Of a DNA stretch of 64,000 nt, positions 17,083 to 62,722 are shown in pieces. Position 1 is the first letter of the stretch, and every line of letters starts with the position of its first letter. The stretch is from Paramoeba atlantica. Its lineage: Eukaryota; Protista; Discosea. The stretch lies in the NCBI GenBank assembly GCA_977017575.1, contig CDRNVI010000043.1, positions 1 to 64,000 of the forward strand. The letters are read 5' to 3'. The notes under the pieces are model-generated. The model saw only the letters and a list, made by a program, of their open reading frames with translations. It was not told where the DNA came from and did no database searches. The position numbers and the translations under genes were made by a program.

Positions 17083-17145
17083 AATTACCCCCATTTTGTT
17101 TAATTACCCCCTTTTTGTTTAATTGTCCCCTTTTTGTTTAATTGA
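17083..17145 (+). repeat. 19-bp tandem repeat (AATTACCCCCTTTTTGTTT)x3 at the 5' junction of the minus-strand CRE fragment
   Basis: Read directly. Confidence 0.85.
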
Positions 17146-24600: not shown

Positions 24601-25015
24601 TTTCAAAAATTTTTTTCCGAAAAAATCCGAACTTGGCGGACCCGTCCTGCGGATACGCGGGGGGGTCACCCCCGGGTAGGGGGGTGGAAAATGCGCGCCA
24701 AGACCCCGGCTACCCTTTCTGCGGTTTTTTTTCGAAAACTAATTTTTTCGAAAAAATTTGCTCGACCATGCCCCCCCCCCCTGGACCCCCCCCCTGGACC
24801 CCCCCCCTGGACCCCCCCCCTGGACCCCCCCCCTGGACCCCCCCCATGGACCCCCCATTTTTTTCAATTTTTTTTTTCAGTTTTGGACCACCGGAGCCCC
24901 CTTTTATATTTTTTTCTTCTATTATATTACTGTGTTCCCCTTTATATTTTCACTGTTTTTGTTCACTTTTTTTTCAATAATCGAGTGTAGAGCGGTAGTT
25001 TTACAACCACCGCAA
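21699..25015. mobile_element. Block of three ~0.9-kb Helitron/Helentron-like non-autonomous units (21699-22581, 23179-24071, 24072-25015) enclosing a 597-bp unrelated spacer
   Basis: Units have identical ends (TTTTCTTTTTTAGG…CAACCACCGCAA) and the block is inserted at A^T with no TSD. Each unit has a 45-bp-arm hairpin at one end, a short hairpin at the other and a variable (CCCCCCCTGGA) core. Confidence 0.6.
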
Positions 25016-32114: not shown

Positions 32115-32369
32115 TGATAGGGCGCATAAGCGCGCCCCTGCGAAGTGCGCCTGTACTTCAGAGGGTGCCTTCCCAGCTAGGAAGGGGTACAGACTATGCG
32201 ATATGAAGGAACAATGGCAGGAATGTGTTTCGTTTTTTTTTGTTTTTGTTTTGATTTGAATAGATTGTAGGGTGTAGCGCCAAATTTGTAGTCGGAAGTC
32301 AACGTCCATGCTTGGTGTTGTACGTCCTGCTTGTTGTTGCATTCCTTTTTTCTACTTTTTCTTTTCTTA

Positions 32370-42175: not shown

Positions 42176-44385
42176 GTTTTTTTTATAACAATTTAATCAC
42201 TATGACACGCCCTGCTCGGGGAACCGCCAACACACCGAAGAGCATGAGTGTGAAGTCTGGTCGTGTAACTGTAAAAATACGGACGCAAGACGCGAGCAGC
42301 AAAGAAAAGATTGTAAAAAGCGATGCAGTAATTAAGAATTCTTCCACGGAAAAGCCGAAGAAAACACCACGCATCCGAGTCATTGGAGCCGAACCTTTAT
42401 CGAAGAACTGGGTCGATCACGGAACACCCACCATTACCCCGGTAAAGAACATCATCAAAATTACTCCGCAAAAATTTAAAATGGTCTCGAACCAAGAAAA
42501 CTCTGGAAACGCACGCGAAATCAACACACAATTTTCGTTTCCAACAGCTGAAAACGGGCAAGAGAGTGACATCGAAAGTGAGCGTGATCAAATGACGCTA
42601 GACAGTGATTCCGACGCTGATCAGGGAGAAATGGCGATGCGAAACAACAGCACAAAAGCAGCAGATCAAGTTCACAACACCGTAGCGAAATGGGGGAAAG
42701 GCACTGAATGCGTAATAGAATGGGGGTTTCGGCAGAATTCAGAGAGCTACAAGTCGAAAGGGACTGTTGTTGGACGAACCGCGCGAAAAGGCAATGTTAA
42801 AATTAAAGTATCCTACGTACCAGCCTTAGGAAACCAAGGACCCAGCGGCGTCTTATACCTTCCATAGTCGGACAAAATCAAAATCTACAGTCTTCGGGCG
42901 ACGAAACTTCTTCAAGTGGAGACGGCGATCCAGAACCTGGAGGAGGAATCAGAAAATGTCTCGTCTGACGACAGTGGCTGCGATCTCGACCCCCTCCCGG
43001 ACCTTCCCAACATCGAGCCATCCTTCGCGGTGCATGTGGTAGCAATCTTCCGTGCGATTATCCGAGGCTATGCCACTGTTGAACTTGATTCTGAGAAAGC
43101 AGCGATCTGGCACAAATTTATGAATGCGCCGCGAGACTCACTTGCTACAGTGCGGGATGCAATTAGAAGAACCCAAAGAGTGGGACACGTGCGAAAGGAA
43201 CGTAACGAGCTATCAGATGGCATAAATCTAAGTGCAGAACAACGAGCCGAACTAGAAATCGACAGGCGCGCGATCCGAAACGCGTTGCGAACAGCCAAAG
43301 CAGGGAATCTGGGGAAAGCCACTCGAATTCTAGATAACATTTACAAGGACTCCACTCTTTCGGCCGAAGAAAAATTTCAGAAACTACGAGAATTGCATCC
43401 TGTTGGACCCCCTATCCAAATACCGGAAGCTGACTTCCCACGCATCGGAGTTGTTGAAAGTTCGGAACTTCGTCTGGCAGTTGAGAAATTGGCTCGTGGA
43501 GCTTCCCCCGGACCAAGCGGGCTAAGTGAGAGTATGATGCGGTTGCTTGTAGACGATGATGTATCATGCCTTTCACTGTGCCACATGATTCGAGATGTAA
43601 TCAACGGAGAAGTTCCACTAAGCGTCCGGAAGCGCCTTACTCGCTGCAGAATCATCGCCCTACCAAAGCCGCAGAACGGGATACGGCCAGTTGCCATGGG
43701 AGACACTATTTTGAAAATCTGTGGATCTATTCTACTGCAGCGACATGAAACCACCTTGAAGACATTCTTTGCGCCAATTCAACGAGGAGTCCTACACAAA
43801 AATGCCTGCGAATCCATCGTCCACGAACTGCTTCAAGAATACGAGGACGGACATGCGTTGCTTACGGTAGATTTCAGCAATGCGTATAATACCCCGCGAC
43901 GCGATGCCATTGCACAAACACTGGTAAGCAATCCCATATTCAAACCTTTCCTGCGCCTGTTCTACTTTGAGTATGGGCTACCTTCGGAGCTCCTCTTCTT
44001 CGCGCATAATGCCCTCTACGCTGTCTTGGAAAGTTCTTCCGGAATCCGCCAAGGTTCAGCTCTATCCTCCATGTACTTCTGTGCCCTTCTACAAAGCCCA
44101 ATACGAGAAGTAGCCAGCCTATATCCCGACGTAACGATCAGGGCATACCAGGATGACGTGACCCTAAGCTCGAAAAACGTGTTGTCACTTGAGGCAGCGT
44201 TCTTGCACTTGCGCGAACTTACCAGTGATCTTAACCTGCATGTCAAGTTTCAGAAATGTGAATGGTTCCAAAAGAATACTACATTTGATGACGAACTATT
44301 GTCTCTGAACCGCTTAGGCGTTAACTCCCGGAATGATGCGCTTAAAATATTGGGAGCGTACATAGGAGCAAATGAGGTGTTAAAA

Positions 44386-44474
44386 ATTGTAAATTTTATT
44401 AAGCTTGTAAATTTTATTAAGCTTGTAAATTTTATTAAGCTTGTAAATTTTATTAAGCTTGTAAATTTTATTAA
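44386..44474 (+). repeat. 18-bp tandem repeat (GCTTGTAAATTTTATTAA)x~5
   Basis: Read directly between the left TSD and the ORF start. Confidence 0.95.
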
Positions 44475-47400
44475 TGGAAATTGATAAAATTCGGGCGGAG
44501 GCGTCCGGACCCTTTGAATCTTTGCTTTTGATCCAGGACAAACTTCGAAGGGCCACGTTCAAGCGGGGAAACCTCTTTTTGCCTCCTCGGCAGAGAGAGG
44601 GAGTAGCTTTACTCCGGCCGCGGGCCCTGAGCCGGCTGGCTTTATCTTTATCTTCAGGGAAGCGCTTTGCTGTCGCGTGGTGTACTACGTATGATAAGTG
44701 TACGAGGCTATGGGAAGGGACGGTTATATCGTGTGGGAACGGGTCCAGCCTGATCAGATATGATGTAGCTAAGGATTGTCTTTTTCCATTCCCTCCGAAG
44801 GATTCCCGAATTTTAATTCAAGGCGGAAAAGTAGCAACTCTGAAGGTAAAGGTATATCGCAAAAGGTTTAGGAATCGCAAATGCTGCTCTCGGCGCGGCG
44901 TCCGAGAGCAGAAGCCCATGATATCAGCTATGAACGAGGGGTTGAATATCGGTACCTTAAATATTGACACGTTGAAGGTTAAAAGCGCTGATGTAAACGC
45001 TCTGCGGAAGTGTCTCAGATTGCAAAAGGTGGTTGTTTTTATGAAGAGCTGTAAGGCTCCTATCTTTGGATTGCAAGAAACTAGGCTCACTTTTGAAAGC
45101 AGCGAACCGATAGTTCATCGTAAACTCTATATTGAAGGCATTTGGCTACATGTATATCTTATGAGCGCAATAAATGGATATAATGGTATGGCATTTATTA
45201 GCCGCATGCAATTATTTGTTGAAAAGGTCTCTGACAGAATTATGAAAGGGACGGTTCGTTTTGGAAGCACAAAAGCAACGCTATTCAATGTTTATTCCCC
45301 CATTGCTTCTTCAAAACAAGATATTCAGGAGGATTTTAATAAGTCACTGTTTGACGCTTGGCACGAGTCTAATGCAGCACTAAAAATTATCTGTGGTGAC
45401 TTTAATGCTCCTCTACAGAATCCGTCGGGCCGAAAATGCTCGTCAAAGAGAGCTAAGGCTTTAAGAGAGTTTCTTGAGAGTTTGGGTGCGAAATCAGCCC
45501 ACGAGACCTGTACCTCGCCTCGGAAATGGACTTTTCGTTTTCCACCAACCAGAAAAAACCCAGACGGGAAGACAAAACAATTAGATCACATAGTTTTTAA
45601 TTCGCGCTTTTGTTCAGCTGTACGTTTACAACGAGTAATGATGGCCCCTTGTCCGACACCCCATTGTGCAGTCATTGTAAATTTCCAAATTCGTTGGAAA
45701 ACCAAGGCCAGAGAACAGGAGGATAGGCCATATTGGGGCTCTCTTAAAAATTCAGAAACAAGTCAAAAATTTAATGCAAGTGTCAAAGCAGCTATGCGTG
45801 CTCCATGTAAAAGATCCCAGAAAGAATCCGAAGAAACTAATCGATGGGGCAGATTCTCTTCCTCATTGATCGCTGCATCGAAAACTCTTCCAAAACTAGC
45901 TAGCAGCGTTGAGGAAAAGAAATCACCAAATACTCACAATCTCAACTTAGGGTCAATAATACGGCTCGCAAAAAACAAGGAAAAATTTAAGGTATGCGAA
46001 CAACGCTATTCAAATGAAATGAACGAATGTATTATTTCTGAATGCAACAATATCGAGAAAGATTTAAAGCGAAAACCTAAATCCGCTTTTAAAGCAATTA
46101 GAACCATGCTTGGAGAACATAAGAAGGACTTTCCCGTTTTCGGAGATTCTCCACAAAAAGGCTTGATAGCTGTACGAAATCATTTTCACAGTACAGACAC
46201 ACTCTCGATAGCCTCACAATCCTTTGCTTTTACGCCTTCTAGTAAGTGCAAGATTCCTATACTAGACGAAATGTTTACAAAAGTGGAATTAATGGATGCC
46301 ATTTCTAAGATGAAGTATGGAAAATGCCCTGGAGCTGACAATATTCCAGCAGAAGTTTTAAGATCCATCGTTCAAGAAGACGAGCTAGCCAGCATCCTCC
46401 TAGAAATTATGAATGAAATTTACCTCACAGGGGCATCTCCGGATTCATGGAAAACAATTCTTCAAATTCCGATACCTAAGAAGGGGAATCTTAGCGAAAT
46501 CATCAACTGGAGACCTGTTTGTATAGTGAATCACGTCGTAAAATTGCTTAACCGGATGGTGTTAACAAGGATACAACCTGCGGTAGAATCTATGCTGCGT
46601 CCTAATCAATTTGGATTTCGCCCCCATCACTCCACAAATGGGGCACAAGCGGTTTTTAATGAAATTTCGTCCAAGGCGATGAGGGGTAGTGGTGTGGTTG
46701 TCGGGTTTGTGGATTTTAAGCAAGCATTTCCATCGGTTACATGGCAGGCTATTCGAGCAGCTCTGCAAGCTTTTGGTATCCCTGAAAACCTAGAACGAGT
46801 CATAATGTCTATTTACACAGATTTACGAGCATATATCAGGACTCCATACGGAAACACTGAAGAATTTCCAATTTCAACGGGAACACTTCAGGGTGATGTT
46901 CTTGCCCCTTACATATTTATTATGGTTCTTGATCGCGTTCTTGAAACTGCAATTGATAAAAACTCATACGGCTTGGTCACGCACTCTACGGGAACGAAAA
47001 GTCGAGGTGAAAAAGCTATTAGAATTTCGGATGTAAATTATGCAGATGACATTGCTTTATTTGCGCATACAAAGCAGGAACTCGGAAATATGCTTGAAAA
47101 ATTAGCAGAAGTTGCAGGAAAAGTAAATTTAAAAATGAACATGGGAATAAATAAAACTGCATGGATGACAATCGGAAAATGTCCCGATACAAATGAGGAA
47201 CTTGTCTTGCCTTCCCTCGGTCTAATACCAAAAGTGAAGACATATAGGTACTTAGGTAATGCAACAAACCCCGAAGATAACTTATCAACCCCAAGGGACC
47301 GGATTAGACTTGGGTGGTATACTATGCACAGGCTGCGTCCAGTTTGGAACTCACCTCTTTCAATTCTTTGCCGCACTCGTATATTTCAAACTTTAGTTAT

Positions 47401-48742
47401 GCCAGTTATTTCCTATGGTTGTAGCACGTGGAAGATCTCGACCTCCGATTTACTGAAAATGGACACTGAAATTTCTAAAATGAGACGAATAGTGTGCTGC
47501 GTACATAAATCCTGGGACGGTCAACGAAGCATGCGTCTTGAATCATTGTATCAGGGAGAAAACAAGCTCAGTACAGTCTCTAAATGTCAGCGAGCAAGTT
47601 TAATAGGGCATTTAGTACGACATTCACCAGTTTTCTGTAATACAATGTCATGGCGCGATGAAGATTCCAGTAAAAATAGATCAGTCTCCGAATTATGCGC
47701 GGAAGATCTCAATTTAAGTACAGCAGAGATGCTGTATTATCCAGTAAGTCGAACGTCATGGGCAAAGAAAGTTGATCAACTTCGCGATCGGTTGGAGCCA
47801 AGACCTTCATACACACAGTTCAATAAATCTGGATGGGAAAGAAAAATTTCTGCAATCACTAACACAAAAGCGTCACAATTCGTAGAAGAAGGTCCCAAAC
47901 CATACGCTCGGCGTAAAGGTGAATTGCATATATATACAGATGGTTCTCTATCCACAAAGAAAGGTGCATCTGTAGGTGGGTCTGGGTTTTATATTTTGGG
48001 ACAAGGTTTTGATCAAGTCATGGTAAGCAAAAAGCCCCCGGAAGATATTGAAAGTACAATTACAGCGGTTGAACTTTATGCGGTGATTGAGGCACTTCAA
48101 TTTTCCCAAGATTATGGAACAGACATCGTTGTACACACAGATTCGCATTACATATGGGAATTTTTTCACATCCACAGGCACCGCAATAGATTGATAGGGT
48201 TTAGTGACTTTCAAAATCCAGAAATCCTACGAAAGCTGTGCAACATTTGTATCAAAATTGAATCAGGATCGAAAAATTTGTTTTGCGTAAAAGTTCGCGC
48301 CCACGAGGGGAACCCCCATAATGAAATAGCGGATTGGCTTTCCAAGGAAGCAGGAACACTTGATCACACCAACGCCGTCACTTATAGGCGATGCTCCGGA
48401 AATGTGATAGGGAAGAGACTAATTAGCACCCGTGAGGGTATTGACAATCACCCAGCAGGAAAGAGGAACCCCAATCCTTCAAAAGAAAAATATCCTCCAA
48501 AAGAAAAATTTCAAACTAAACGTGACAGCAAAATAAAAACAAAGGAATCATCTAAAAACGACGTGATGAATAATATTCCGAAACGAACGCGAAGCGAAGA
48601 TCCAGAACGTCTAAAACTTCAACGAAACAACAAGAACCAAAAGGCTCAGACAAATATAGACGGGAAAAGTGAAATTAAACCAAAGCTGCGAAGCCCACAA
48701 ACAAAAAGAAAGCATTCTACAGAACGCGTTTCACGTGACTAA
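44474..48742 (+). CDS. 1422-aa single-ORF LINE protein: W-rich domain, AP-like endonuclease, RT, RNase H
   Basis: IGTLN, LQET, GDFN and LDHI; NWRPVC, QFGFRP, GTLQGDVLAP and YADD; YTDGS, VELYA, HTDS and HEGNPHNEIAD. Clade is unresolved (Ingi- or RTE/RTEX-like). Confidence 0.95.
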   Translation: MEIDKIRAEASGPFESLLLIQDKLRRATFKRGNLFLPPRQREGVALLRPRALSRLALSLSSGKRFAVAWCTTYDKCTRLWEGTVISCGNGSSLIRYDVAKDCLFPFPPKDSRILIQGGKVATLKVKVYRKRFRNRKCCSRRGVREQKPMISAMNEGLNIGTLNIDTLKVKSADVNALRKCLRLQKVVVFMKSCKAPIFGLQETRLTFESSEPIVHRKLYIEGIWLHVYLMSAINGYNGMAFISRMQLFVEKVSDRIMKGTVRFGSTKATLFNVYSPIASSKQDIQEDFNKSLFDAWHESNAALKIICGDFNAPLQNPSGRKCSSKRAKALREFLESLGAKSAHETCTSPRKWTFRFPPTRKNPDGKTKQLDHIVFNSRFCSAVRLQRVMMAPCPTPHCAVIVNFQIRWKTKAREQEDRPYWGSLKNSETSQKFNASVKAAMRAPCKRSQKESEETNRWGRFSSSLIAASKTLPKLASSVEEKKSPNTHNLNLGSIIRLAKNKEKFKVCEQRYSNEMNECIISECNNIEKDLKRKPKSAFKAIRTMLGEHKKDFPVFGDSPQKGLIAVRNHFHSTDTLSIASQSFAFTPSSKCKIPILDEMFTKVELMDAISKMKYGKCPGADNIPAEVLRSIVQEDELASILLEIMNEIYLTGASPDSWKTILQIPIPKKGNLSEIINWRPVCIVNHVVKLLNRMVLTRIQPAVESMLRPNQFGFRPHHSTNGAQAVFNEISSKAMRGSGVVVGFVDFKQAFPSVTWQAIRAALQAFGIPENLERVIMSIYTDLRAYIRTPYGNTEEFPISTGTLQGDVLAPYIFIMVLDRVLETAIDKNSYGLVTHSTGTKSRGEKAIRISDVNYADDIALFAHTKQELGNMLEKLAEVAGKVNLKMNMGINKTAWMTIGKCPDTNEELVLPSLGLIPKVKTYRYLGNATNPEDNLSTPRDRIRLGWYTMHRLRPVWNSPLSILCRTRIFQTLVMPVISYGCSTWKISTSDLLKMDTEISKMRRIVCCVHKSWDGQRSMRLESLYQGENKLSTVSKCQRASLIGHLVRHSPVFCNTMSWRDEDSSKNRSVSELCAEDLNLSTAEMLYYPVSRTSWAKKVDQLRDRLEPRPSYTQFNKSGWERKISAITNTKASQFVEEGPKPYARRKGELHIYTDGSLSTKKGASVGGSGFYILGQGFDQVMVSKKPPEDIESTITAVELYAVIEALQFSQDYGTDIVVHTDSHYIWEFFHIHRHRNRLIGFSDFQNPEILRKLCNICIKIESGSKNLFCVKVRAHEGNPHNEIADWLSKEAGTLDHTNAVTYRRCSGNVIGKRLISTREGIDNHPAGKRNPNPSKEKYPPKEKFQTKRDSKIKTKESSKNDVMNNIPKRTRSEDPERLKLQRNNKNQKAQTNIDGKSEIKPKLRSPQTKRKHSTERVSRD

Positions 48743-50833
48743 TGGTATTTGAAATCTTGTGAAATATATTCCCCCCCCCATAATTTCAAATTTTGAGTAG
48801 CAATTTTGTAGCCCGGACAAGGCGAGCAGTTCTTATTCATGTTTTTTCTGTCAGGTTGTTTTTATTCTTATTACTATATTTATTATTTATTGTAGATATA
48901 TAAGGTTATAAGTTTTATGTTCATATTTATATGTTAGTTGTATTGTTTTATTTTAGCGCTCAAGTAGTTGATACCTTCAATTTGCGTTGAACTCTAGGGG
49001 CGTTGGTGGTTCCATTTCCTGGTTTATTGTAATGAAAAGACTCATCATTATGCGAGGACTCATTAAAACAAACATTAAATTTGAGATATGGCAAACAGTT
49101 GTGTGGTCAGTGTTTTTAATCTAAGGTGTGAAGATGTTTAAGGGAAAATATTAACCCCTTAACTGATTATATCAGTGTTGTTGTTGTTGTTGTTGTTGTT
49201 GAGGTGTTAAAAGATCTTCTTCTACGGAAGATGGAAAAACACAAATGCCTCTTCCGTCGACTCCTGCTCATGGGTCCAAGCAATCTCTCCCTCGCAATTC
49301 TACGTCGATGCACGATTCCGCGACAAGATTATCATCTGCGAGTTCATCGTCCGGAAGCAACCACGCGGCTAGCCGAAACCTTCGAAGACCACGTTCAACA
49401 AGTTCTTAAGAAATGGTGCGGAGCTGACACACAAGCCTTGCAACTAGCGGTCCTTCCTCAGAAACTAGGCGGCCTAGGATTGATCTCTTCGACTTTGAAG
49501 CAGAAATACTACTTTGAAACTGCTAGGAAATCTATTGTTGAGCACCCAAAACCCAATAACGCTCCAGTAGGTATAAAAGGTGGAGATAAAGTACACGCCA
49601 ACGGACAAAGTCGTAGTGAAGTCGCCCAGAAGCTTCTGAAAAAGAAGATGAAAGAGGAACACGAAAAGAAGGCTTGCGAGCTACGGAAGAATTCGCAATT
49701 GGAGCTTGTAATGAAACGCACTATGGAGAACAACTTGCATCTCGAAAGCACGAGCAATTATATCAATCCTTATTTATTTCGATACACACTCATGATGCGG
49801 TTAGGAATCAGTTTACCTCAAGCTCCTGCCAAAGTCACATGCCCTGGATGCTGCACCCAAGAATCCCCATCCAGTATCATTCCACATGTTGCAGGCTGCT
49901 CTCGTTGCTCTGGTATGAACTGCACACGCAAACATTCCCACATCGTCCGCTACCTATCAGAGTTATGTTCCAAAGCAGGTCTTCCGAACGTCACTGAACC
50001 GCGCATTCACTCCTCATATTACTGCACCAAATGTAAATGCTCCATCGCCGCCGACGTAGCCGAACAGCATCCATGTAAAGCACGCCGTATCCGCTCGGGA
50101 CCTGATCTCGCCATCATGTGGCCACACATGGGGGAAGTGCTCTATGACTTCACGGTGGTGCACACCTGTTGCAACAGTTACGCGAAACAGACCAGTTCAG
50201 CACTCATACAACAAGCGATCGATCGAAAAATCAAGAAATATGTCTCCGAAAAGGGTGTCGATAGTGAATACTTCCGTTGTCTGGCCACCTCAGACTGTGG
50301 CCTTCTACACAATGACACCAAGGCACTTTTGAAGGCAATAGCGCAGCGCGCAAAAATGAACTACGACAATGTACGACAGGGATTTCAACTTGAGATTGAA
50401 AAGATGTCCGCATACACGGTGGTATCTCAACTACGTGAGTACATTCCGAAGGATAACTGGATAGGTGGACTTCGCTTCTAGAAGGTCACTAAGTGTGTTC
50501 GCATACTCTCCCTCCCCCAGTCTTCTCTCACTTTGCTTCTTCTTTCACTTTGCTTCTTCCACCTAGTTGCTTGCTCTTTCCCAGCCAAAGACGATGCGCT
50601 AGCCGAGCTACTCCCATCCTCCTCTTCCTCCTAATACGCAGATCAGAATATTAGGTTCCTTTATAATATGTAAACTTGTGTAAAATAGTGATTGTATTTC
50701 ATATGTATACCGCAGACTCCCCCTTCAAAAGCGTATGAATGCCGCAGGCATGAGGAAGATTATAAGGAAAAAAAAAAAAAAAAAAAAAAAAAAAAGAATC
50801 TTTATCTTTATCTTTAAAGATAAAGAATCTTTA

Positions 50834-50870
50834 TCTTTAACGATAAAGATACAGTTTCTGTACCTTGTTG
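50834..50870 (+). other. SL exon-like sequence, preceded by scrambled and inverted SL fragments (50797-50833)
   Basis: Identical to 2802-2838. The upstream ATCTTTATC and GATAAAGA pieces are SL sense and antisense fragments. Confidence 0.85.
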
Positions 50871-52829
50871 AATTTTTTTTTACGTAGTATTCTCTCGGGG
50901 CCCAGCTCTTTTATGACGCAAACCAATACTCCTCAGAGCCCCGCACGCTCGAACGAGGACCACTCCTCATTCCATATGAGTGCAAAGGAAGGAGCTCTCA
51001 GCGTAGGCGCTCTCGCCGACGAAGAACGTGCGCACTCTCTCGGCAGTTGGGACCAATTCCAAGGAAACAAGCATTTGATTCGCGCTGTCAGCACATACGA
51101 CGAACAACTCTACACTACACCAATCCCGGCGAATATTCCTAAGGAATGGTTGGAACGCGCACGTCACATCTCCCAGGAAAAGGAAACCCCAGACACGGGC
51201 CACGTAGAGGCCGAAGACGAGGAGATGCAGCACTGTGGGGTGAGAAGGCAGAAAATTACTCACGAGGCTACACCCACATCAAAGATCCCCGATGAAGCTC
51301 GGACGCTCAAATCCGCAGTGAAGGATGCTCTTTCCCACCAAGGTCGAAACACTTCCCCATCGAAAGGAGTGACCAAAGCGGACTCGCGCTCGTCAAGGCG
51401 AACACCGGAGCCCCGGACATATTTCTCTTCACCGCGACACGCCGCAAACCAAAATAACTTCGCTGAAAAGACACAAACAAGAGAAGAGACTCGGGAATGT
51501 CCGGCCATGGGATGCACTTGGAGAAGTCTGCCGCACGGAGGGTCTTGGCAAGCGTTTTATAACCACGTCGCGTGTCGCCACGGAAACGGAGTTCCCGCTA
51601 CCTGGTGGGATGCAGAAGGCCGATTTCTTTGCAACTTATGCGGGCGCCATTATGACATCAACAAAAGGGAAGCTCATCCACAAGCCTGCAAAGGGAACGT
51701 TGCGAACCCCCAAATCCCATCGCGCGCAGCACACTCGAGCGACCCAAGCCACCTTCCGGGGACTCAAACTCATCACTCTGAACTTCCCTCGCTATCCTCT
51801 ATCTGCACGCTGCGCCTGAACACTTGCAAGGACGTGCCTCCACGTTGCCGTCAACTGTGGGGAGAAATTATCACCAAAGCAGCCCAAAACGCAGTCACCG
51901 AAAACTCTACAGCCGCGTGGACCCTATTCGCCATGCTCCCCAAGTGCTTACTACCCGCCCCACACCGAGGAGGACGTAAGAACCACACAACTTACGCATC
52001 ATACGTCCAGAAGTGCATGAACCGATGGCTCGCGCAAGATTATGTCTCCCTATGGAATGAAGCAGTAGACAACGCACTCAAGAAACAATCTGTAGCCCCT
52101 ACAACCGTTCACGACGAAGAGGAAAAGGCAGCTATCCGAGCAGAGCTTCTAGCTCGACAAGGCGAGTACTCTAGGGGTATGGCTGCACTCACGGCGGATG
52201 CTATGGCGCCTGACGACGAAGACACACTCCTCAAACTTCAGAGCAAGCACCCGCCCCGACATCCAGACAGTGACATCATCGACTATACGCCTCCGCCCAC
52301 AGCGCCCCTAATAATGGATGAACCCGTGGTAGCGAAAACTATCAAGAGCTTTCACCGGGGTTCCTCGTCCGGAACCATGGGTTTACGACCCGAGCACTTG
52401 CAAGCTGTACTCCTGGCGCACGTAGATAACACCGTGAAACCCCTTACTGCCCTTAAAAACCTCGTGAATCATCTACTAGCCGGGAAAGCACCCCTAGAGG
52501 TACAACCATATTTTGCGGGAGCCAGACTTTGCGCGCTTGAAAAGGGCGAAAATGACGTCCGCCCCATAGCAGCGGGAGAAACGATACGTCGATTGGTAAG
52601 CAAAGCGGCTTGCAATGCAGTGAGGAGCAAAGCCAGGGAATTTTTTAAGGGACTACAGTTCGGCGTCGCGACACCGGCCGGTTCGGAACGAATAATTCAC
52701 ACTTGCCGGCACGCAATGACAATTCATACGGACAACCCCGACATGGTATTATGTAAAGTCGACCTAAGCAACGCATTCAACAACGTTAGCAGAGCAACTT
52801 TCTTGAAACTTGTAGCTTGTAACTGTTCT

Positions 52830-55800
52830 GATCAACCTTTTTATTAAGATCAACCTTTTTATTAAGATCAACCTTTTTATTAAGATCAACCTTTTTATTA
52901 AGATCAACCTTTTTATTAAGATCAACCTTTTTATTAAGATCAACCTTTTTATTAAGATCAACCTTTTTATTAAGATCAACCTTTTTATTAAGATCAACCT
53001 TTTTATTAAGATCAACCTTTTTATTAAGATCAACCTTTTTATTAAGATCAACCTTTTTATTAAGATCAACCTTTTTATTAAGATCAACCTTTTTATTAAG
53101 ATCAACCTTTTTATTAAGATCAACCTTTTTATTAAGATCAACCTTTTTATTAAGATCAACCTTTTTATTAAGATCAACCTTTTTATTAAGATCAACCTTT
53201 TTATTAAGATCAACCTTTTTATTAAGATCAACCTTTTTATTAAGATCAACCTTTTTATTAAGATCAACCTTTTTATTAAGATCAACCTTTTTATTAAGAT
53301 CAACCTTTTTATTAAGATCAACCTTTTTATTAAGATCAACCTTTTTATTAAGATCAACCTTTTTATTAAGATCAACCTTTTTATTAAGATCAACCTTTTT
53401 ATTAAGATCAACCTTTTTATTAAGATCAACCTTTTTATTAAGATCAACCTTTTTATTAAGATCAACCTTTTTATTAAGATCAACCTTTTTATTAAGATCA
53501 ACCTTTTTATTAAGATCAACCTTTTTATTAAGATCAACCTTTTTATAAAGATCAACCTTTTTATTAAGATCAACCTTTTTATTAAGATCAACCTTTTTAT
53601 TAAGATCAACCTTTTTATTAAGATCAACCTTTTTATTAAGATCAACCTTTTTATTAAGATCAACCTTTTTATTAAGATCAACCTTTTTATTAAGATCAAC
53701 CTTTTATTAAGATCAACCTTTTTATTAAGATCAACCTTTTTATTAAGATCAACCTTTTTATTAAGATCAACCTTTTTATTAAGATCAACCTTTTTATTAA
53801 GATCAACCTTTTTATTAAGATCAACCTTTTTATTAAGATCAACCTTTTTATTAAGATCAACCTTTTTATTAAGATCAACCTTTTTATTAAGATCAACCTT
53901 TTTATTAAGATCAACCTTTTTATTAAGATCAACCTTTTTATTAGATCAACCTTTTTATTAAGATCAACCTTTTTATTAAGATCAACCTTTTTATTAAGAT
54001 CAACCTTTTTATTAAGATCAACCTTTTTATTAAGATCAACCTTTTTATTAAGATCAACCTTTTTATTAAGATCAACCTTTTTATTAAGATCAACCTTTTT
54101 ATTAAGATCAACCTTTTTATTAAGATCAACCTTTTTATTAAGATCAACCTTTTTATTAAGATCAACCTTTTTATTAAGATCAACCTTTTTATTAAGATCA
54201 ACCTTTTTATTAAGATCAACCTTTTTATTAAGATCAACCTTTTTATTAAGATCAACCTTTTTATTAAGATCAACCTTTTTATTAAGATCAACCTTTTTAT
54301 TAAGATCAACCTTTTTATTAAGATCAACCTTTTTATTAAGATCAACCTTTTTATTAAGATCAACCTTTTTATTAAGATCAACCTTTTTATTAAGATCAAC
54401 CTTTTTATTAAGATCAACCTTTTTATTAAGATCAACCTTTTTATTAAGATCAACCTTTTTATTAAGATCAACCTTTTTATTAAGATCAACCTTTTTATTA
54501 AGATCAACCTTTTTATTAAGATCAACCTTTTTATTAAGATCAACCTTTTTATTAAGATCAACCTTTTTATTAAGATCAACCTTTTTATTAAGATCAACCT
54601 TTTTATTAAGATCAACCTTTTTATTAAGATCAACCTTTTTATTAAGATCAACCTTTTTATTAAGATCAACCTTTTTATTAAGATCAACCTTTTTATTAAG
54701 ATCAACCTTTTTATTAAGATCAACCTTTTTATTAAGATCAACCTTTTTATTAAGATCAACCTTTTTATTAAGATCAACCTTTTTATTAAGATCAACCTTT
54801 TTATTAAGATCAACCTTTTTATTAAGATCAACCTTTTTATTAAGATCAACCTTTTTATTAAGATCAACCTTTTTATTAAGATCAACCTTTTTATTAAGAT
54901 CAACCTTTTTATTAAGATCAACCTTTTTATTAAGATCAACCTTTTTATTAAGATCAACCTTTTTATTAAGATCAACCTTTTTATTAAGATCAACCTTTTT
55001 ATTAAGATCAACCTTTTTATTAAGATCAACCTTTTTATTAAGATCAACCTTTTTATTAAGATCAACCTTTTTATTAAGATCAACCTTTTTATTAAGATCA
55101 ACCTTTTTATTAAGATCAACCTTTTTATTAAGATCAACCTTTTTATTAAGATCAACCTTTTTATTAAGATCAACCTTTTTATTAAGATCAACCTTTTTAT
55201 TAAGATCAACCTTTTTATTAAGATCAACCTTTTTATTAAGATCAACCTTTTTATTAAGATCAACCTTTTTATTAAGATCAACCTTTTTATTAAGATCAAC
55301 CTTTTTATTAAGATCAACCTTTTTATTAAGATCAACCTTTTTATTAAGATCAACCTTTTTATTAAGATCAACCTTTTTATTAAGATCAACCTTTTTATTA
55401 AGATCAACCTTTTTATTAAGATCAACCTTTTTATTAAGATCAACCTTTTTATTAAGATCAACCTTTTTATTAAGATCAACCTTTTTATTAAGATCAACCT
55501 TTTTATTAAGATCAACCTTTTTATTAAGATCAACCTTTTTATTAAGATCAACCTTTTTATTAAGATCAACCTTTTTATTAAGATCAACCTTTTTATTAAG
55601 ATCAACCTTTTTATTAAGATCAACCTTTTTATTAAGATCAACCTTTTTATTAAGATCAACCTTTTTATTAAGATCAACCTTTTTATTAAGATCAACCTTT
55701 TTATTAAGATCAACCTTTTTATTAAGATCAACCTTTTTATTAAGATCAACCTTTTTATTAAGATCAACCTTTTTATTAAGATCAACCTTTTTATTAAGAT

Positions 55801-55833
55801 CAACCTTTTTATTAAGATCAACCTTTTTATTAA
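52830..55833 (+). repeat. 18-bp tandem array (GATCAACCTTTTTATTAA)x~167
   Basis: Read directly; only about three variant units were seen (near 53545, 53700 and 53940). Confidence 0.98.
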
Positions 55834-55847
55834 TTTAATTTGATAAA

Positions 55848-58800
55848 ATGGCGGACGCGTCCGGGCCACGAGAGTCCACTGAAATCATGAATCTTCTCTC
55901 GCGTTCCACGCTTGATCGGGGGGTTTTGTTTTATCCTTCCATGGGTAAATCAAGGCCTGCTAAACTCCGCGCGAGGTCGTTGCGCCAACTAGCGCGGCAG
56001 ATGTCTTCTGGGTGCGAACTGGCAGTTGTATGGAGGCTCGAGAATACATCAGATTTTAAGCTATGGGAGGGGGTCGTTGAACGTTGGAGTCCATTCCGTT
56101 CAGGATATCCTCGTAATGATGGTCGTTGGCGAGTGCTCTATGCTCAACGTCCGCGTGAAACACTTCCTTTTCCGCCTTATAATCCAGTAGTAGTACTGTG
56201 TGCAGCACGTCTGCGAGTGCCTAGGGATGTCTGTCGCAAGAAAAAGCGACATCGCAAATCGAGGAAACAGTCTGGCAAACGTTTTCTACGCGACTCGGAG
56301 GGTCCAAGAGACCTCGCTGTGAAGAAAATGCTCAGCATTGCAACATTAAACGTGACTACTCTAAAGCTGAAGGGTGATGATGAATTTTCTCTACGAAAAA
56401 GTGCTCATCTGTATGAGGTGATTGGTTTTATGAATCGGAAAGGAGTTCATATACTATGTATGCAGGAGACGCGCTACAGGTTTTCATCTACCGAAATGGC
56501 TGAAGTCCTACATCGCAAAGTACGTTACCGGAAAACGGATTATCATCTTTACCTCACATCGGCTCGCGCTAAAGACGCATATAATGGAATGGGTGTTATT
56601 AGCAGCACTCCACTGATTAATGTTTCAAAACTGACTGAGCGAATCATGGTAAGCGAATTTGAAATGGAGGACGGAGTTGGACACATTGTCAACGTTTATT
56701 CTCCTACTAGAGACTCTGCCGAGACAGAGATTACAGAGTTCCATGGGGATGTAGAATCCTGCTGCGCAGGAATTCGGGAGAACAATTTACACAGACCTCT
56801 CTTCGTTCTAGGTGACTTTAACTCACCACTTACACTTTTGACCAATAAGGATTTAGATCCACATGCAATTGCACGTTTCAAGGGATTATTGTGTTCAATC
56901 GGATGCAAATCTGCTCATGCTCTCTGTCCAAGCAGCCGAACATGGACATGCGAATTGCCAAACAACACACCAAAGAGTGAAAAACAAACGAACGTCAAGA
57001 AGCCAAAGAGAGTCTTGCGGCAATTGGATCACATATGTATTTGCAACAGATTTGCTTCTGCAATACAACGTCATAAAGTTATTATGGCACCTATTCCCAC
57101 AACGCACTGCTGTGAACAAGCGCTCGTAAAAATCAAGTGGAAATCAAGTACTTCAAAGGCATCAAAAATCATTCCTTGGTTTCAACTTCGTGATGAAACA
57201 AAACGAGCGGAGTACGTCAAGAATGTGCATAAGAAATATGAGCAAAATAGCGATGCACCAACCAAGTGGACAGCTCTCTCAAAATGCATTCTACAAGCAG
57301 CCAGAGAGCTCCACAGACCACAAAAACGGAATTCTGATAGAAAGCCCGCACGAGAGTCCATGGCTCATGGGCTTAGAGAGTTATACCAACAGAGTAAAAG
57401 TATAGCAACTTTTAAGAGCCTGGTTAAGGAGCATAGAGCAGAAGTCGAGACGGAAATCACCAATGAATGTGTAGAGCTCGAAAAAAGTATTAAGAAAAAC
57501 CACTCGAACCCATGGAGAACACTACGGCAAGTGTGCGGAACCTACCGCGTGTCCTTCACTACGCCTGGTAATGCAAAGAAAAATAAGCTCCAAGAGGTAC
57601 GTAAGCACTTTATGAATTTCACAGGGTACGATCGGGGAGACCCCAACATTTCTTTTAATGAAGTACATCTTCCCTTTATACCAATTTCAGATGGCAAGTT
57701 TACTGCCGAGGAGCTCTTTTATTCGCTTTCGCACTTCGGGAAGAATAGAGCCCCAGGGGGGGACGGTATTCCCATGGAGGCCTTACAAGCAATTTCGACA
57801 CATCAGGATTTTAGAGATTTATTGCTGGAGCTAATCAATGAAGTGCATGAAACAGGCGTTACCGAAGCATCATGGAAAGTCATTCTTCAAATACCTATTC
57901 CAAAGAAAGGGGATTTATCGCAGCTTTCAAACTGGCGCCCTATTTGCCTTGTAAACAGTATAGTCAAGCTGATGAATTTTATGATTCTTACTCGCATCCG
58001 CCCCAGCGTTGAACCACTTCTTCGAGACAATCAATACGGTTTTCGTCAAAATAGATCTACCGCTGGTGCGCAAACAATCATGAATGAAATAAAGTCCAAG
58101 GCATTTCGGAATAAAGGTGTTTGTGTAGCGTTCATTGATTTCGCAAAAGCATTCCCATCTGTATCTTTCGCTGCGATAAAAGCGAGTCTGAAAGCATTTC
58201 ACGTGGGCGTTCGTCTATCCGAAATGATCATGTCATTGTACTCAAATCTGAAAGGAGTAGTCCGCACACCTTTTGGTATCACAGATTCTTTTCCGATAAC
58301 TACAGGAATACTCCAAGGGGATGTGTTGGCCCCTTACCTTTTCGTGATGGTTATGGATCGCATTCTTAATAAGTCGCTGGACCTGGAAAATCGCGGATTA
58401 CTTTTGAGTTCAAGCGGGACAAGAAAACGGAACCTACAGGAAAAACGAATTTCTGATATTGATTTTGCAGATGACATTGTATTGTTCAGTGATACAAAGG
58501 AAGGTCTCCAGGAAATGATTGACGAAACGTCAAAGGATGCTTCCTTGGCGAACCTAAAGATAGCTGTAGGTGTTACAAAAACCGCATGGATACCTTTCGG
58601 TAAGGTTGCCGGCTCAAATAAGAATCTCCAGACAAAAGAACTGGAAAAGGTACCTAGAGTAGATTCGTATCGACATCTAGGGCATCTTCAAGACAATGAA
58701 ACATCATCTACAATCAAAGATCGTTTGAAACTTGCTTGGTCCTCATTTGCCCGCATGCGAGGAATATGGATTTCATCTTTAAGCTCTCATCTTAAACTCA

Positions 58801-59981
58801 GACTATACGACGTGCTTATATACCCTATTCTGAACTTTGGTTCAGGCGCATTGCACATTTCTCAAAAAATGTTGCGTTCGATTGATGTCGAAATTAATAC
58901 GATGAGAAGAATTGCATCTCAGTGCAACAAATTGGACGAGTATGGTTTTTGTTATCCTACAGACTCTCTCTACGTAAATACATCACGATTTTCCACCATT
59001 CACAAAGTTCAGAGAGCCAAACTTACCGGACACATGCTGAGACATTCTTCGAACTATCGAGAGCTGGTGCAATGGAGACATAAATCTAATTCGAGACGTC
59101 CTTCTCCAAGCGAAGCATGTATTTCAGACTTGGGTATAACTTTAGAAGAGGCATTGGTTTATGCTACAGATCGAGAACATTGGTTTCGTCTCACCGAAAA
59201 GCTAAAACTTTCACTTGAGCCAGTGGTTGACTACGAGCGTGCTACTACAAAAAAATGGAAAGCATTGAAAGCCACAGCTATCAAGAACAAGAGTTATAAA
59301 GAGCTACAATTTATTGAAGAATCTAGCGTGCCATTCCCCAAACTTAAATCTATACATTTCTACACGGATGGTTCAGTGAGAGTTTTGCGCGGAACACAAA
59401 CGGTGCGTAGCGGTGCTGGCGTTGTTTTCTTGAAGATTAAGGGTGACCCTGATTACTACTCTATTCCGTTGGAGGTGGGAACAAGTGAGAGGGCCGAATT
59501 ATTAGCATTTCGTGAGGCTATTTCGAAAATTCCAGAAGGATCACTCTCTTGCGTTTTTCATACTGATTCTTGTTACGTTTGGCAATATTTTCACAGTTTA
59601 AGATCACGTTTTCGCGTTGTAGGCTACATCGGAATTGCAAATGGAGACTTGATGGATCAAATCGACCATAAATTACGCGCGTTGAAGGGTCAAGGGGTAC
59701 AAATATACATGTGTAAAGTTAAATCTCACTCGGGAAATCCTTGGAACGAGGCAGCAGACTCGCTCGCATTGTCTGCATCTAGAAAGAAAGTAAGCGAACC
59801 TGAAATAAAGAGAAGAAAGTCTTCAAATTCGCAAACCACTGCTCAGCAGTTTGCAAAACGAAACGCGAAAAGTCAGCGTGCAGTGAAAGCCTCATCCGCG
59901 CCTAAACGTGAGGCAGAGGAAAGAGTTGTTATTCGCCAGAAAGTTACGAGAACTGGCGGTGGAAGGGGGACACCAAAGTAA
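55848..59981 (+). CDS. 1377-aa single-ORF LINE protein: W-rich domain, AP-like endonuclease, RT, RNase H
   Basis: IATLN, MQET, GDFN and LDHI; NWRPICL, GILQGDVLAP and FADD; YTDGS, AELLA, HTDS and HSGNPWNEAAD. It is collinear with 44474-48742. Confidence 0.95.
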   Translation: MADASGPRESTEIMNLLSRSTLDRGVLFYPSMGKSRPAKLRARSLRQLARQMSSGCELAVVWRLENTSDFKLWEGVVERWSPFRSGYPRNDGRWRVLYAQRPRETLPFPPYNPVVVLCAARLRVPRDVCRKKKRHRKSRKQSGKRFLRDSEGPRDLAVKKMLSIATLNVTTLKLKGDDEFSLRKSAHLYEVIGFMNRKGVHILCMQETRYRFSSTEMAEVLHRKVRYRKTDYHLYLTSARAKDAYNGMGVISSTPLINVSKLTERIMVSEFEMEDGVGHIVNVYSPTRDSAETEITEFHGDVESCCAGIRENNLHRPLFVLGDFNSPLTLLTNKDLDPHAIARFKGLLCSIGCKSAHALCPSSRTWTCELPNNTPKSEKQTNVKKPKRVLRQLDHICICNRFASAIQRHKVIMAPIPTTHCCEQALVKIKWKSSTSKASKIIPWFQLRDETKRAEYVKNVHKKYEQNSDAPTKWTALSKCILQAARELHRPQKRNSDRKPARESMAHGLRELYQQSKSIATFKSLVKEHRAEVETEITNECVELEKSIKKNHSNPWRTLRQVCGTYRVSFTTPGNAKKNKLQEVRKHFMNFTGYDRGDPNISFNEVHLPFIPISDGKFTAEELFYSLSHFGKNRAPGGDGIPMEALQAISTHQDFRDLLLELINEVHETGVTEASWKVILQIPIPKKGDLSQLSNWRPICLVNSIVKLMNFMILTRIRPSVEPLLRDNQYGFRQNRSTAGAQTIMNEIKSKAFRNKGVCVAFIDFAKAFPSVSFAAIKASLKAFHVGVRLSEMIMSLYSNLKGVVRTPFGITDSFPITTGILQGDVLAPYLFVMVMDRILNKSLDLENRGLLLSSSGTRKRNLQEKRISDIDFADDIVLFSDTKEGLQEMIDETSKDASLANLKIAVGVTKTAWIPFGKVAGSNKNLQTKELEKVPRVDSYRHLGHLQDNETSSTIKDRLKLAWSSFARMRGIWISSLSSHLKLRLYDVLIYPILNFGSGALHISQKMLRSIDVEINTMRRIASQCNKLDEYGFCYPTDSLYVNTSRFSTIHKVQRAKLTGHMLRHSSNYRELVQWRHKSNSRRPSPSEACISDLGITLEEALVYATDREHWFRLTEKLKLSLEPVVDYERATTKKWKALKATAIKNKSYKELQFIEESSVPFPKLKSIHFYTDGSVRVLRGTQTVRSGAGVVFLKIKGDPDYYSIPLEVGTSERAELLAFREAISKIPEGSLSCVFHTDSCYVWQYFHSLRSRFRVVGYIGIANGDLMDQIDHKLRALKGQGVQIYMCKVKSHSGNPWNEAADSLALSASRKKVSEPEIKRRKSSNSQTTAQQFAKRNAKSQRAVKASSAPKREAEERVVIRQKVTRTGGGRGTPK

Positions 59982-62722
59982 GTGTGAGTGCTTGCTGTGT
60001 ATCTCCGTACGTGTGCTAGAATATGCCTTGAGGAAGTTTTTATATTCCATTACTTTATGCGGTTTGTGTGCTCTAGTATTGGAGGCACAAAAACTCTGAA
60101 TTTGGAGGTGATAGAGATGGAAGTGTTTGATGTGAAAGTGCTAAGTATTTTAGCCGACTTTGTCGGTATTTTGGATTGGATTGGATTGGATTGAAACTTG
60201 TAGGCGAACATTTTCCGGAATTGTTCCCCTGGGCTAGCTGGTGCTATACGACAACTAGTGCTTTGACCTATCGTGACCACACACTCCTTTCGGATGAAGG
60301 CGTCCAACAGGGCGATCCCCTGGGACCACTTTTCTTTTCACTGGTCTCCTTGGAACTTGCAAAAGAAATCTATCACCAGGCCGACCTGGACTTGCAGCTA
60401 TGGTACCTAGACGACGGGATTCTCATTGGCAGGGCAGAAGACGTCAGGAATTCGTTGGATACAATCGCCAGAGTAGGTCCGCGATGGGGCCTATATCTGA
60501 ACATGTCCAAGTGCGAAATAATCACCCCCCCTGCCTCGGCTAACGTTGTAACCATATTTCCGGACATACCCGACGCCAAAATAAACGTGTGCGGTAACTT
60601 TAGTGTCCTAGGAAGCCCAATTGGGTCCCCTGAGTACTGTACTGAATATCTGCTGACACACGCGGTTGAGCCCGCTGAAATGGCCCTTGATGCCATAACC
60701 AGAATCCGGGACCCCCAGGTAGCCATGGCGCTAATTCGACAATGTGCTGGATTCTGCAAATTGGTACATGCTCTACGAACGACGCCCCCGCAATCAGTTA
60801 TGAACCTCTGCAAGCGGCTCGACGACTTCCTAATGCACGCGGTCGAATCCACTCTATGTCCTTTGCCTCCCTCCGCACGCGCCCAAATTCAGCGCTTGAA
60901 AAGACACGGAGGTTTCGGTTTAAAATCGGCGACCGTGCACGCATCCTCCGCTTACGCCTCCTCTGTAGTTTTCGCGGCGGCCACGGACTCATGGGATGCT
61001 TCAGAAGTGGAGGGCTTTCTACAATCGATTGAAGACGTGAATTCGAAAGTTGGTATCAGTCTACTCGACTCAAACGGACTCGTGCGTTCCATCCCGCGCC
61101 ATAAATGTGAAGAACTCTCCCCCAAAGCTCGCTTCACCAAGAGATCTCGCGAGGGAGAAACCAGACATCCCTTTGAACCCGCAAATCCGCCTTCCCTTCC
61201 TCGTGACCGCGCATTGCCTCATTCCGAAGACTTTCCACACGATACAAACCCCCTTTACGCATCCGAAGATTGCGTTGACGCGCAGCCACCCGACTGGGCA
61301 AGTAATAGCGTCCCCCGCCAAAAAGACATAAGTTACGCGATCTCTGCCACAGAGTTCTCGCACGCATATGAAAACGCCGACGCCCGGACTCGCGCACGCT
61401 GGGCTTCTCAGTGTGGTAAAGGAGCAAGCAGTTGGGCGTTCGTAACTCCTTCCAGAGACACGGGCCACGCCTTTAACCCCACAGAATTCCGCATCCTATC
61501 CCGCTGGTGGTTAGGTGTGCCCGTGTACGGGGAAGAAGGTACATGTCCCAAGGGGAACTGCACACTCCCATTGGACATACACGGCGATCACGCTCTCACA
61601 TGCAAGCACGGGGACGGTATCATCGGCCGTCACAACGCCTTGGCCGATCACTTTGCCGATACTTGCAGTAACGCACGCCTAGCTCCCCAACGGGAAAAAA
61701 GCCTCGGGAACCGGGGCCCCGGAGGCGCTCTGACTAGGCCCGGGGACGTCTTCCTTCCGAGTCTCTTCCTCGGGAAACCTATCGTGCTTGACTTCGCGGT
61801 CACTCACGCCCAGCAATCTAAATACACGGACACAGTCCGAAATGCTAGCTGGGTGGCCGCGGGGTCCTTCGCAGAGCATTATGCCTCAGAGCAGAAAGTC
61901 CGACAACGCCGTGAATCTGAAGATGCCGGAAGCGATTTCACAGCTATGGTGGTCGAGAGCTATGGCTCTTGGAGTGCCAGTGCTTTAGCCGTTCTCCGGA
62001 AGGTTGGAGAACGAAGGGCAAAAGCGTCCAACGGTATCTTGACAGACGAGGCCTCTACGCTCCGTCTCGTGACCGACATGAACGTAACATTGATGCGTTG
62101 CCAGGCACGCATGATGATTACGCGCCTGCCGGCTGTGGACCCCTTGCCCCCTTTAATCGAGCAATAGCACGATGACGGATGTGCAAGATGGGCCGCTCAG
62201 CCGGAACTCGAACAGCTGGTCCGGATGCTGGTCGATGCCGGCAGGGTCTATGCTCACGCCTAGTCCGCCAGGGCTAGGTACTCCAAGTGAGGTAGGACAT
62301 GGGTAGGGAACTTTGTTCCTCCCCGTCGGCCAGCATCATGCTCCGCGACCGTGCCGCTGTCGGCACAGGCCCATTGCTTGCGCCCTCTCGTACAACAAGA
62401 GAAGGGTTACCAAGGCAAGCTGGGAGAGGTCGAAAGACCCGGTCCGGAACGCGCGAATGGTTCGGGGAAAGTCTGCCCCTCCTAGCCGAGGGAGACCTTA
62501 CCCTCCCTGGAAAGCTGGTAAGATTGGTAAGGGGAAGTGGGTAAGATGGGAAAGCATGTATTTGCTAGTTATATATTTTGCTCGTTTTTAAAATGGGGGG
62601 AAGTGAGGGAAAGAAGTTGAGCAAGTAGGAAAGTAAGTGAGAAAGTCATACCGTACATACATATATAAAGTTAGAACTCGTACTCTTCCCCCCCTATTAT
62701 CTGCAAAAAAAAAAAAAAAAAA

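Follow-up and report, generated by a model that had tools for sequence, protein, structure and literature searches.

Tandemly reiterated 5′ ends of LINEs in a Paramoeba atlantica assembly, and their place in a candidate HDV-like ribozyme

L1Tc/ingi and R2 elements carry at their 5′ ends ribozymes that resemble the one of hepatitis delta virus (HDV) (PMC4035085, PMC3185411, PMC3774820, PMC11331408); these cleave just upstream of themselves and thereby free the RNAs of L1Tc and R2 (PMC4035085, PMC3185411, PMC3774820). We analysed two long interspersed nuclear elements (LINEs), elements 1 and 2, in a 64-kb stretch of DNA (the window), which is the first 64 kb of contig CDRNVI010000043.1 (C43) in the Paramoeba atlantica assembly GCA_977017575.1 (45.7 Mb, 248 contigs), a spliced-leader genome of kinetoplastid type. 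Both encode apurinic/apyrimidinic endonuclease (APE), reverse transcriptase (RT) and RNase H domains, and both begin with a tandem array of an 18-bp unit. Such head arrays are general in the genome, where nine diverged LINE families carry units of 17-19 nt in 1 to over 262 copies. As judged from a covarying fold, the unit is probably the cleavage-site strand of an HDV-like self-cleaving ribozyme.

The closest described system is L1TcRz/Pr77 of the trypanosomatid L1Tc/ingi elements (PMC3185411, PMC4035085), a kinetoplastid APE-RT-RNase H LINE whose first nucleotides likewise lie in an HDV-like fold, and in which cleavage is expected just 5′ of nucleotide +1, freeing the element from read-through transcripts; SIDER2 elements, which belong to the same comparison, have two tandem hallmarks. 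Unlike Pr77 with its 77 nt, the fold predicted here extends over about 160 nt, overlaps the open reading frame (ORF) and contains large insertions, and an 18-nt segment of the 5′ strand alone, not the whole ribozyme, is reiterated, to over 260 times. Protein searches gave no L1Tc/ingi or trypanosomatid match, and the nearest sequences in this protein-level comparison were environmental proteins at 40-61% identity. The ribozymes of R2 and RTE elements (PMC3774820, PMC11331408) also place a nested double pseudoknot at the 5′ end of the LINE, where it sets the RNA's 5′ end; they tolerate a long J1/2, and the state of the 5′ end affects formation of the 5′ junction. R2 differs in being site-specific, with a cleavage site defined relative to 28S sequence, and no reiterated P1 strand has been described for it.

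Mouse L1 carries tandem 5′ promoter monomers of about 200 bp, from a few to a few dozen, which are not part of a ribozyme helix. The head arrays resemble them in position and in a unit number that varies among copies of one LINE family, but the unit here would be a 17-19-nt strand of a ribozyme helix and not a promoter of about 200 bp. Telomerase, and RTs during template jumping, copy a short template segment repeatedly by realigning the DNA 3′ end, and the microsatellite tails of LINEs are usually ascribed to RT slippage. The elements described here carry such 3′ tails, (TGT)n and (GGATT)n, whereas the putative reiteration of their heads would occur at the template 5′ end and in an 18-nt register. 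In dinoflagellates, which trans-splice as well, retroposed genes bear stacks of relict spliced leaders built over cycles of retroposition, and there too short units stand in tandem at the 5′ end of the retrocopy; the units here are instead family-specific, unrelated to the host leader and present in up to hundreds of copies. A light search of the literature found no description of a reiterated ribozyme strand and no relevant account of 5′ tandem repeats in LINEs. New here are a unit that is the first 18 nt of the element RNA, the covariation of P1, P2 and P4, the in-phase starts of insertions, the single-unit heads, the link between age and homogeneity of the arrays, and a metagenomic relative.

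Head arrays in the window and across the genome

Array coordinates and copy numbers were obtained with Tandem Repeats Finder (TRF), domains were called with Pfam, and junctions with the target-site duplications (TSDs) were read from the sequence. A preliminary description of the window had reported two LINEs with 18-bp head arrays inside 13-bp TSDs, in 5 and about 167 copies, laid out as TSD, array, a short separate segment, ORF, microsatellite tail and TSD. TRF bore out the arrays, with 4.9 units of 18 bp at 44387-44474 (100% matches) in element 1 and 167.0 units of 18 bp at 52830-55833 (99% matches) in element 2, and the TSDs were found as reported. The order of the parts also holds, except that element 2 has 14 nt of filler (52816-52829) between TSD and array. 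The proposed separate segment (TTTTATTAAT) is merely the end of the last unit plus the leader, so that both intact elements share the order TSD, 18-bp array, short leader, ORF, microsatellite tail, TSD. The near-perfect homogeneity claimed for the 3-kb array was confirmed in the assembled sequence, with three variant units at the window locus and none at its duplicate on contig C69. The parts of the two elements are as follows.

44373-44385, + strand: 5′ TSD of element 1 (TGAGGTGTTAAAA), 13 bp, recurring as the 3′ TSD at 49200-49212
44386-49199, + strand: body of element 1, the sequence between the TSDs
44386-44474, + strand: head array of element 1, 4.9 units of GCTTGTAAATTTTATTAA (TRF, 100% matches; sequence)
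44474-48742, + strand: ORF of element 1, 1422 aa, APE-RT-RNase H (ORF list; Pfam)
49176-49199, + strand: microsatellite tail of element 1, (TGT)n, with the 3′ TSD next to it at 49200-49212
52803-52815, + strand: 5′ TSD of element 2 (TTGAAACTTGTAG), 13 bp, recurring as the 3′ TSD at 60191-60203
52816-52829, + strand: filler of 14 nt between TSD and array of element 2, missing in an independent copy on contig C17
52830-55833, + strand: head array of element 2, 167 units of GATCAACCTTTTTATTAA (TRF; unit map)
55848-59981, + strand: ORF of element 2, 1377 aa, APE-RT-RNase H (ORF list; Pfam)
60171-60190, + strand: microsatellite tail of element 2, (GGATT)n, with the 3′ TSD next to it at 60191-60203

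Both ORFs matched Exo_endo_phos, RVT_1 and RNase_H in Pfam, and their proteins are 35% identical. The first unit of the element 1 array starts at phase +2 and contains one odd A, and the leader between array and ORF in element 2 is 14 nt long. Each element is nested in another RT-encoding element, the ORF of which resumes beyond the insert. These hosts are two of three RT-only elements in the window that are headed by the 3′ end of a spliced leader (at 2823, 42160 and 50855); these leader-headed elements bear poly(A) tails (A26 at 6533-6558, A28 at 50768-50795) and follow one another tail to head.

A protein search of the genome yielded at least 34 scored LINE loci among 1477 candidates, many of them close to contig ends. 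The pattern TTTTATTAAG-N8-TTTTATTAAG occurs 1652 times in the genome, as compared to 2 occurrences of a reversed control. In full-length heads the arrays adjoin the start codon. Copy numbers by family were compiled from 20 LINE loci, and those for family B cover seven of its eight heads in the genome.

Element 2 family: 167 units (one locus, present twice, on C43 and C69) and 59 units (independent insertion on C17)
Element 1 family: 4.9 units and, in an independent copy on C17, 6.1 units
Family B: 4.2, 16.9, 44.6, 55, over 252, over 262 and over 262 units
Family C: 2.1, 9.6 and over 245 units
Family E: 87 units
Family F: 33 and 15 units
Family G: 2 units
Families B2 and el1b: a single unit

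The C43 and C69 loci of element 2 have 100% identical flanks, over 9.6 kb, and 167 units each. A 5′-truncated LINE copy with a 10-bp TSD is without an array. Environmental protein relatives reach 53-61% identity (P0001, P0002, P0040 and P0041). A LINE on a metagenome contig (L057), at 30% identity, has at least 6.5 units of 19 nt at its head, the contig copy beginning within this array, and a microsatellite tail of 7-nt repeats, which makes the head array an old feature that extends beyond this genome. Outside the APE LINEs, we observed a retroelement family with a gag-like zinc knuckle and RT (N-terminus MGVFTRAKAKE), of which the window copy is headed by two 19-20-nt direct repeats (32302-32339) and the copy in L021 (1540-1600) by 1.5 units of a LINE-type 18-mer. 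Reiterated heads may therefore extend beyond APE LINEs.

The unit as RNA 5′ end and as part of a predicted ribozyme

In families B2 and el1b, where the head is a single unit, that unit makes up the first 17-18 nt of the element. The unit is therefore the first 18 nt of the element. Its nucleotides 8-18 form a hairpin with the leader that ends at the start codon, in all families but el1b (z-scores of -3.7 to -6.2). A coding segment that lies about 100 nt farther downstream complements nucleotides 1-6, and GGGG always comes after this segment. The start of the unit differs by family (GATCAA, GCTTG, GACCT, GACCAC, GAACAC, GACAAC), and the pairing codons covary with it.

We aligned the nine families (alignment A1) and wrote a pseudoknotted model on this alignment; its row for element 1 (el1) came from copy L047, which matches element 1 of the window at 99.7%. 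In the model, P1 pairs nucleotides 1-6 of the unit with the downstream coding segment, and P2 pairs the conserved start motif GGCGGA with a downstream CTCCGCC. The L3 loop of P3 ends in CCA, P1.1 is formed by the CC of L3 and the GG directly after P1, P4 is a long hairpin, and J4/2 reads G-C-N-A-A. Paired cells made up 82.7% of the modelled positions on A1, as compared to 40-50% when the partners were slid by 1-3 columns, and two-sided pair changes numbered 18 against 5-10 in the slid controls, a result matched by none of 500 shuffles. Compensatory changes were seen at five of the six P1 pairs and 10 of the 16 P4 pairs. Three features do not vary across the nine rows, namely CC in L3, GG in P1.1 and G-C in J4/2, and such invariant pairs give no covariation support. 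Both P4 and the leader hairpin fold in all families, the latter weakly in el1b (z-scores of about -2 to -6). A local hairpin at the start motif (CGGA...TCCG) was also considered as the conserved element and rejected, since family C breaks it and keeps P2 by compensatory change.

In the metagenomic LINE on L057, a stretch of 128 nt presents these elements in the same order, with helices of different sequence (GTCTT/AAGAC, GTGGG/TCCAC and CACC/GGTG, then GGGG and GCAAA); CC, GGGG and GCAAA stand at the places matching P1.1 and J4/2. The order P1, (J1/2), P2, P3, L3, P3′, P1′, P1.1, P4, J4/2, P2′ is kept in the nine families and in L057. As modelled, it is the order of the nested double pseudoknot of HDV-like ribozymes, including P1.1 and the C of J4/2. 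In the window, the predicted parts lie at the following positions.

44457-44621, + strand: ribozyme-like core of element 1 (last unit, leader hairpin, P2, P3, P1 3′ strand, P4, J4/2 and P2 3′ strand)
44560-44568, + strand: predicted P1 3′ strand of element 1, CAAGC, with GGGG (A1 row el1, pair counts, hairpin folds)
55816-55976, + strand: ribozyme-like core of element 2 (A1, pair tables, hairpin folds)
55816-55821, or the start of any unit, + strand: predicted P1 5′ strand of element 2 (A1)
55850-55856 and 55965-55971, + strand: predicted P2 of element 2 (A1)
55901-55903 and 55909-55911, + strand: predicted P3 of element 2 (A1)
55912-55917, + strand: predicted P1 3′ strand of element 2, followed by GGGG at 55918-55921
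about 55921-55957, + strand: predicted P4 of element 2 (A1, hairpin folds)
55959-55960, + strand: invariant G-C of J4/2 in element 2 (A1)

The 5′ ends of insertions provided a second view of the unit boundary. All six TSD-verified insertions, with 5, 17, 45, 55, 59 and 167 units, start at unit phase 0 to +2; under truncation at random phase within arrays, the chance of this is about (3/18)^6. A similar picture comes from seven heads without a verified TSD: five begin no more than 2 nt from a unit boundary, and of the other two, one begins about 3 nt ahead of it and the other at +8. We infer that the starts at phase 0 to +2 agree with the predicted ribozyme cut site. Loss of 1-2 nt at the 5′ end is common, and the first G is missing in two single-unit copies; because of this loss, the array would seem to act as a buffer of spare ends, and the repeats may be spare copies of the element's fragile front end.

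Several observations weigh against a ribozyme. No Rfam ribozyme or HDV-type family was matched at the gathering score or at E values up to 10; neither pseudoknots nor large insertions are scored by those models. Pairing in P3 is weak (70%), P1 has just 5-7 bp, large insertions are present in J1/2 and between P2 and P3, and J4/2 of el1 reads C-U-U-U-A. In addition, the fold overlaps coding sequence, and part of its conservation is therefore due to the protein. Taken together with the start phases, the fold nevertheless points to self-cleavage, with the unit as the probable cleavage-site strand.

Growth of the arrays and rival explanations

Nearly identical copies can differ greatly in their arrays. 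Copies L036 and L038 differ by 1 nt in 4301 and carry over 252 and 55 units, respectively, and element 2, at a divergence of 0.28% between its C43 and C17 copies, has 167 units in the former and 59 in the latter. The arrays hold pure runs of 134, 99 and about 240 units of a single variant, with the ancestral 18-mer beside the ORF and a 17-mer distal to it, as would be expected if the one unit at the 5′ end of an RNA were copied again and again. Where diverged duplicates have short arrays (L001, L022), the difference is at most one unit. Comparison of the arrays with element age, as proposed in the preliminary description, showed that uniformity falls with family divergence, from 98-100% at a divergence of up to 0.9% to 95-97% in family C (1.6-2.7%), and to 83% in one array. 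Two other comparisons were set aside: the C43 and C69 loci are uninformative on array stability because their flanks are identical over 9.6 kb, and no convincing variant pattern near the ORF is shared among family B insertions.

The preliminary description had offered two readings, a promoter or processing module that expands after insertion and an RT that repeatedly re-copies the 5′-terminal 18 nt of its template. The covarying HDV-like fold agrees with a role in processing, but later expansion fits poorly with short arrays that are stable and older ones that decay. Re-copying is plausible and agrees with a unit that is the first 18 nt, the pure runs and the unequal arrays of near-identical copies. 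Growth coupled to retrotransposition is therefore favoured over growth at the DNA level, at about even chances of being correct. We would venture, with somewhat less confidence, that the LINE RT behaves like telomerase at the template 5′ end, re-copying the terminal 18 nt that form the ribozyme cleavage-site strand; insertions would then be born with a renewable cap, and kilobase-scale satellites would be a by-product.

A mechanism that accommodates these observations can be outlined. The 17-19-nt unit would be the first stretch of the LINE RNA, with nucleotides 1-6 as the 5′ strand of P1 and nucleotides 8-18 as the 5′ strand of the hairpin that the leader closes just ahead of the start codon. 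The unit and roughly the first 45 codons would jointly build the nested double pseudoknot of P1, P2, P3, P1.1, P4 and J4/2 (G-C-N-A-A). Read-through transcription is usual in kinetoplastids, and the element may be transcribed in this way. The ribozyme would cut 5′ of the G that opens whichever unit occupies P1, so that the template RNA would begin at a unit boundary with one to many units, and new insertions would start in phase. Integration would often remove 1-2 nt from the 5′ end, with spare units keeping an intact P1 strand, and the array would in this way buffer an essential terminal sequence. Arrays would grow in bursts tied to retrotransposition, the likeliest route being renewed annealing of the cDNA's 3′ end, which is complementary to the start of a unit, to a unit farther downstream in the RNA, followed by another copying of the 5′-most unit, much in the manner of telomerase; afterwards they would decay by point mutation. 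For the full account, with a ribozyme-strand unit, spare ends and growth tied to retrotransposition, we see the chances as evenly balanced.

Stuttering at the level of the RT is plausible, on circumstantial support, and some features of the arrays speak against it. The multi-unit blocks duplicated in L042 and the landmarks repeated in L039 are equally typical of unequal exchange, and the a/b unit variants are homopolymer-length differences that could partly be long-read consensus errors. L020 and L028, two copies of one element with a short array that is not at a LINE head, share the same pattern of degenerate units, so that arrays do pass through RNA, in this case with no gain of units. A sample of 12 short arrays, drawn by pattern from contigs C1-C3, contained none at a LINE head.

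A functional 5′ module that the RT copies as it stands in the RNA, with length changing after insertion by replication slippage or unequal exchange, would account for the blocks of about 35 units duplicated with the same variant pattern in L042, the 'c-a' landmark repeated five times in L039, and the difference of exactly one unit between L001 and L022; moreover, most copies lie in repeat-rich contig ends, where recombination is likely. However, short and medium arrays are stable or decaying over 1.5-2.7% divergence, while between copies only 0.02-0.3% apart the unit number changes by 100 to 200 or more, and rapid turnover should keep old arrays uniform, which at 95-97% or 83% they are not. 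We consider this explanation unlikely, though it carries appreciable weight. Less probable still is that the unit is a promoter or initiator monomer, with transcription initiating at the unit G and the downstream pairing serving translation or recognition by the RT. In-phase starts fit this idea equally well, the unit has a TATA-like core followed by G, and Pr77 of L1Tc is both promoter and ribozyme (PMC3383444). It leaves unexplained the covariation of nucleotides 1-6 with the coding segment before GGGG and the recurrence of the HDV-like helix order with its invariant C in ten lineages, and it still requires a separate mechanism of expansion.

The units could also be stacked acceptors, each a pyrimidine run with AG after it, that catch the spliced leader by trans-splicing, and an AG does follow a T-rich run at every unit junction. 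Other element families are leader-headed, and the kinetoplastid-type leader 3′ end (ACAGTTTCTGTACCTTGTTG) has 763 dispersed copies in the genome, as compared to 0 for a control. At C30:519062-519089, a leader 3′ end is joined to a family G unit at phase +1, which suggests occasional trans-splicing at the AG formed between units. This is the single leader-to-unit junction genome-wide, however, the leader is present in none of the six TSD-verified LINE insertions, and the units differ from it in sequence, which makes stacked acceptors highly improbable. The related idea that the units are relics of the leader was rejected because its 3′ end is unlike all units and only the one junction was found. 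We give as little credence to assembly artefacts that inflated or collapsed the copy number. Several arrays reach contig ends or exceed 4.4 kb, and unit variants in homopolymer length are typical of long-read errors; nonetheless, arrays of 17-167 units at independent loci have unique sequence and a TSD on either side, C43 and C69, as duplicate loci, both show 167 units, and a metagenome contig from elsewhere has the same feature. A ribozyme-strand unit in an array that grows with retrotransposition is the account we prefer.

Detached arrays, other repeats and significance

The preliminary description named arrays mainly unlinked to these LINEs as a finding that would refute it, and this applies in part: many short arrays lie elsewhere in the genome, but nearly all those seen with at least 15 units adjoin LINEs. 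A-runs or T-runs follow some of the detached short arrays, and no TSDs were found around them within the 1.4 kb searched. Two arrays in the window do not head LINEs.

6559-6652, + strand: detached array, 5.3 units of GACCTTTCCTTATTGTAA, between the A26 tail and the 3′ copy of a 7-bp duplication
13828-13904, - strand: array of 4.3 units of GACCTTTACTTTTATTAA that heads a non-LINE body, with five genome copies about 98% identical

The first of these belongs to a composite insert (5551-6652) in a host RT ORF, flanked by the 7-bp duplication TGGAGTG and made up of the 3′ part of a 5′-truncated RT element (5551-6558), A26 and the 18-mer (x 5.3). An array 3′ of a poly(A) tail is unexpected from simple target-primed reverse transcription. 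For the second, the ORF of the non-LINE body had no match in Pfam; the idea, formed by eye, that the ORF at 13441-13917 is a fragment of a tyrosine recombinase had no Pfam backing and was dropped. Possible origins of the detached arrays are retroposition of cleavage products, chimeras formed by template switching, and nested insertion. A 19-mer (AATTACCCCCTTTTTGTTT x 3.2) lies at 17083-17143 of the window, and its reverse complement directly follows an 18-mer array in L017 (1585-1610).

Repeats of other kinds were also observed. The window begins with 10-bp purine-rich satellites (1-2478), in which (AAGAGGGAGG) x103 changes at 1035/1036 to (CTTTCTTCCT) x144, and a related (AAGAGGAAGA) x381 lies at the other end of contig C43 (L050:5925-9685), 110 bp from a LINE array. 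These satellites may be landmarks of chromosome ends or centromeres. Arrays of a C-rich 13-mer (CCCCCCCCCTGGA) recur inside a repeated segment of about 1 kb, at 22377-22422, 23873-23912 and 24773-24856 of the window and at L037:8899-8969.

LINEs lose 5′ sequence, and how their essential 5′ signals stay intact is an old question. In the elements described here, the outermost nucleotides seem to be essential, as the P1 strand of a candidate ribozyme consists of them, and the elements keep them in several copies, which points to a solution by terminal redundancy like that at chromosome ends. The arrays provide a tractable test of stuttering by LINE RTs at the template end, and they tie a retrotransposon directly to the birth of satellite arrays of 1-5 kb. 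The fold would also extend the 5′ ribozymes of LINEs, here as a candidate, to a lineage outside the trypanosomatids.

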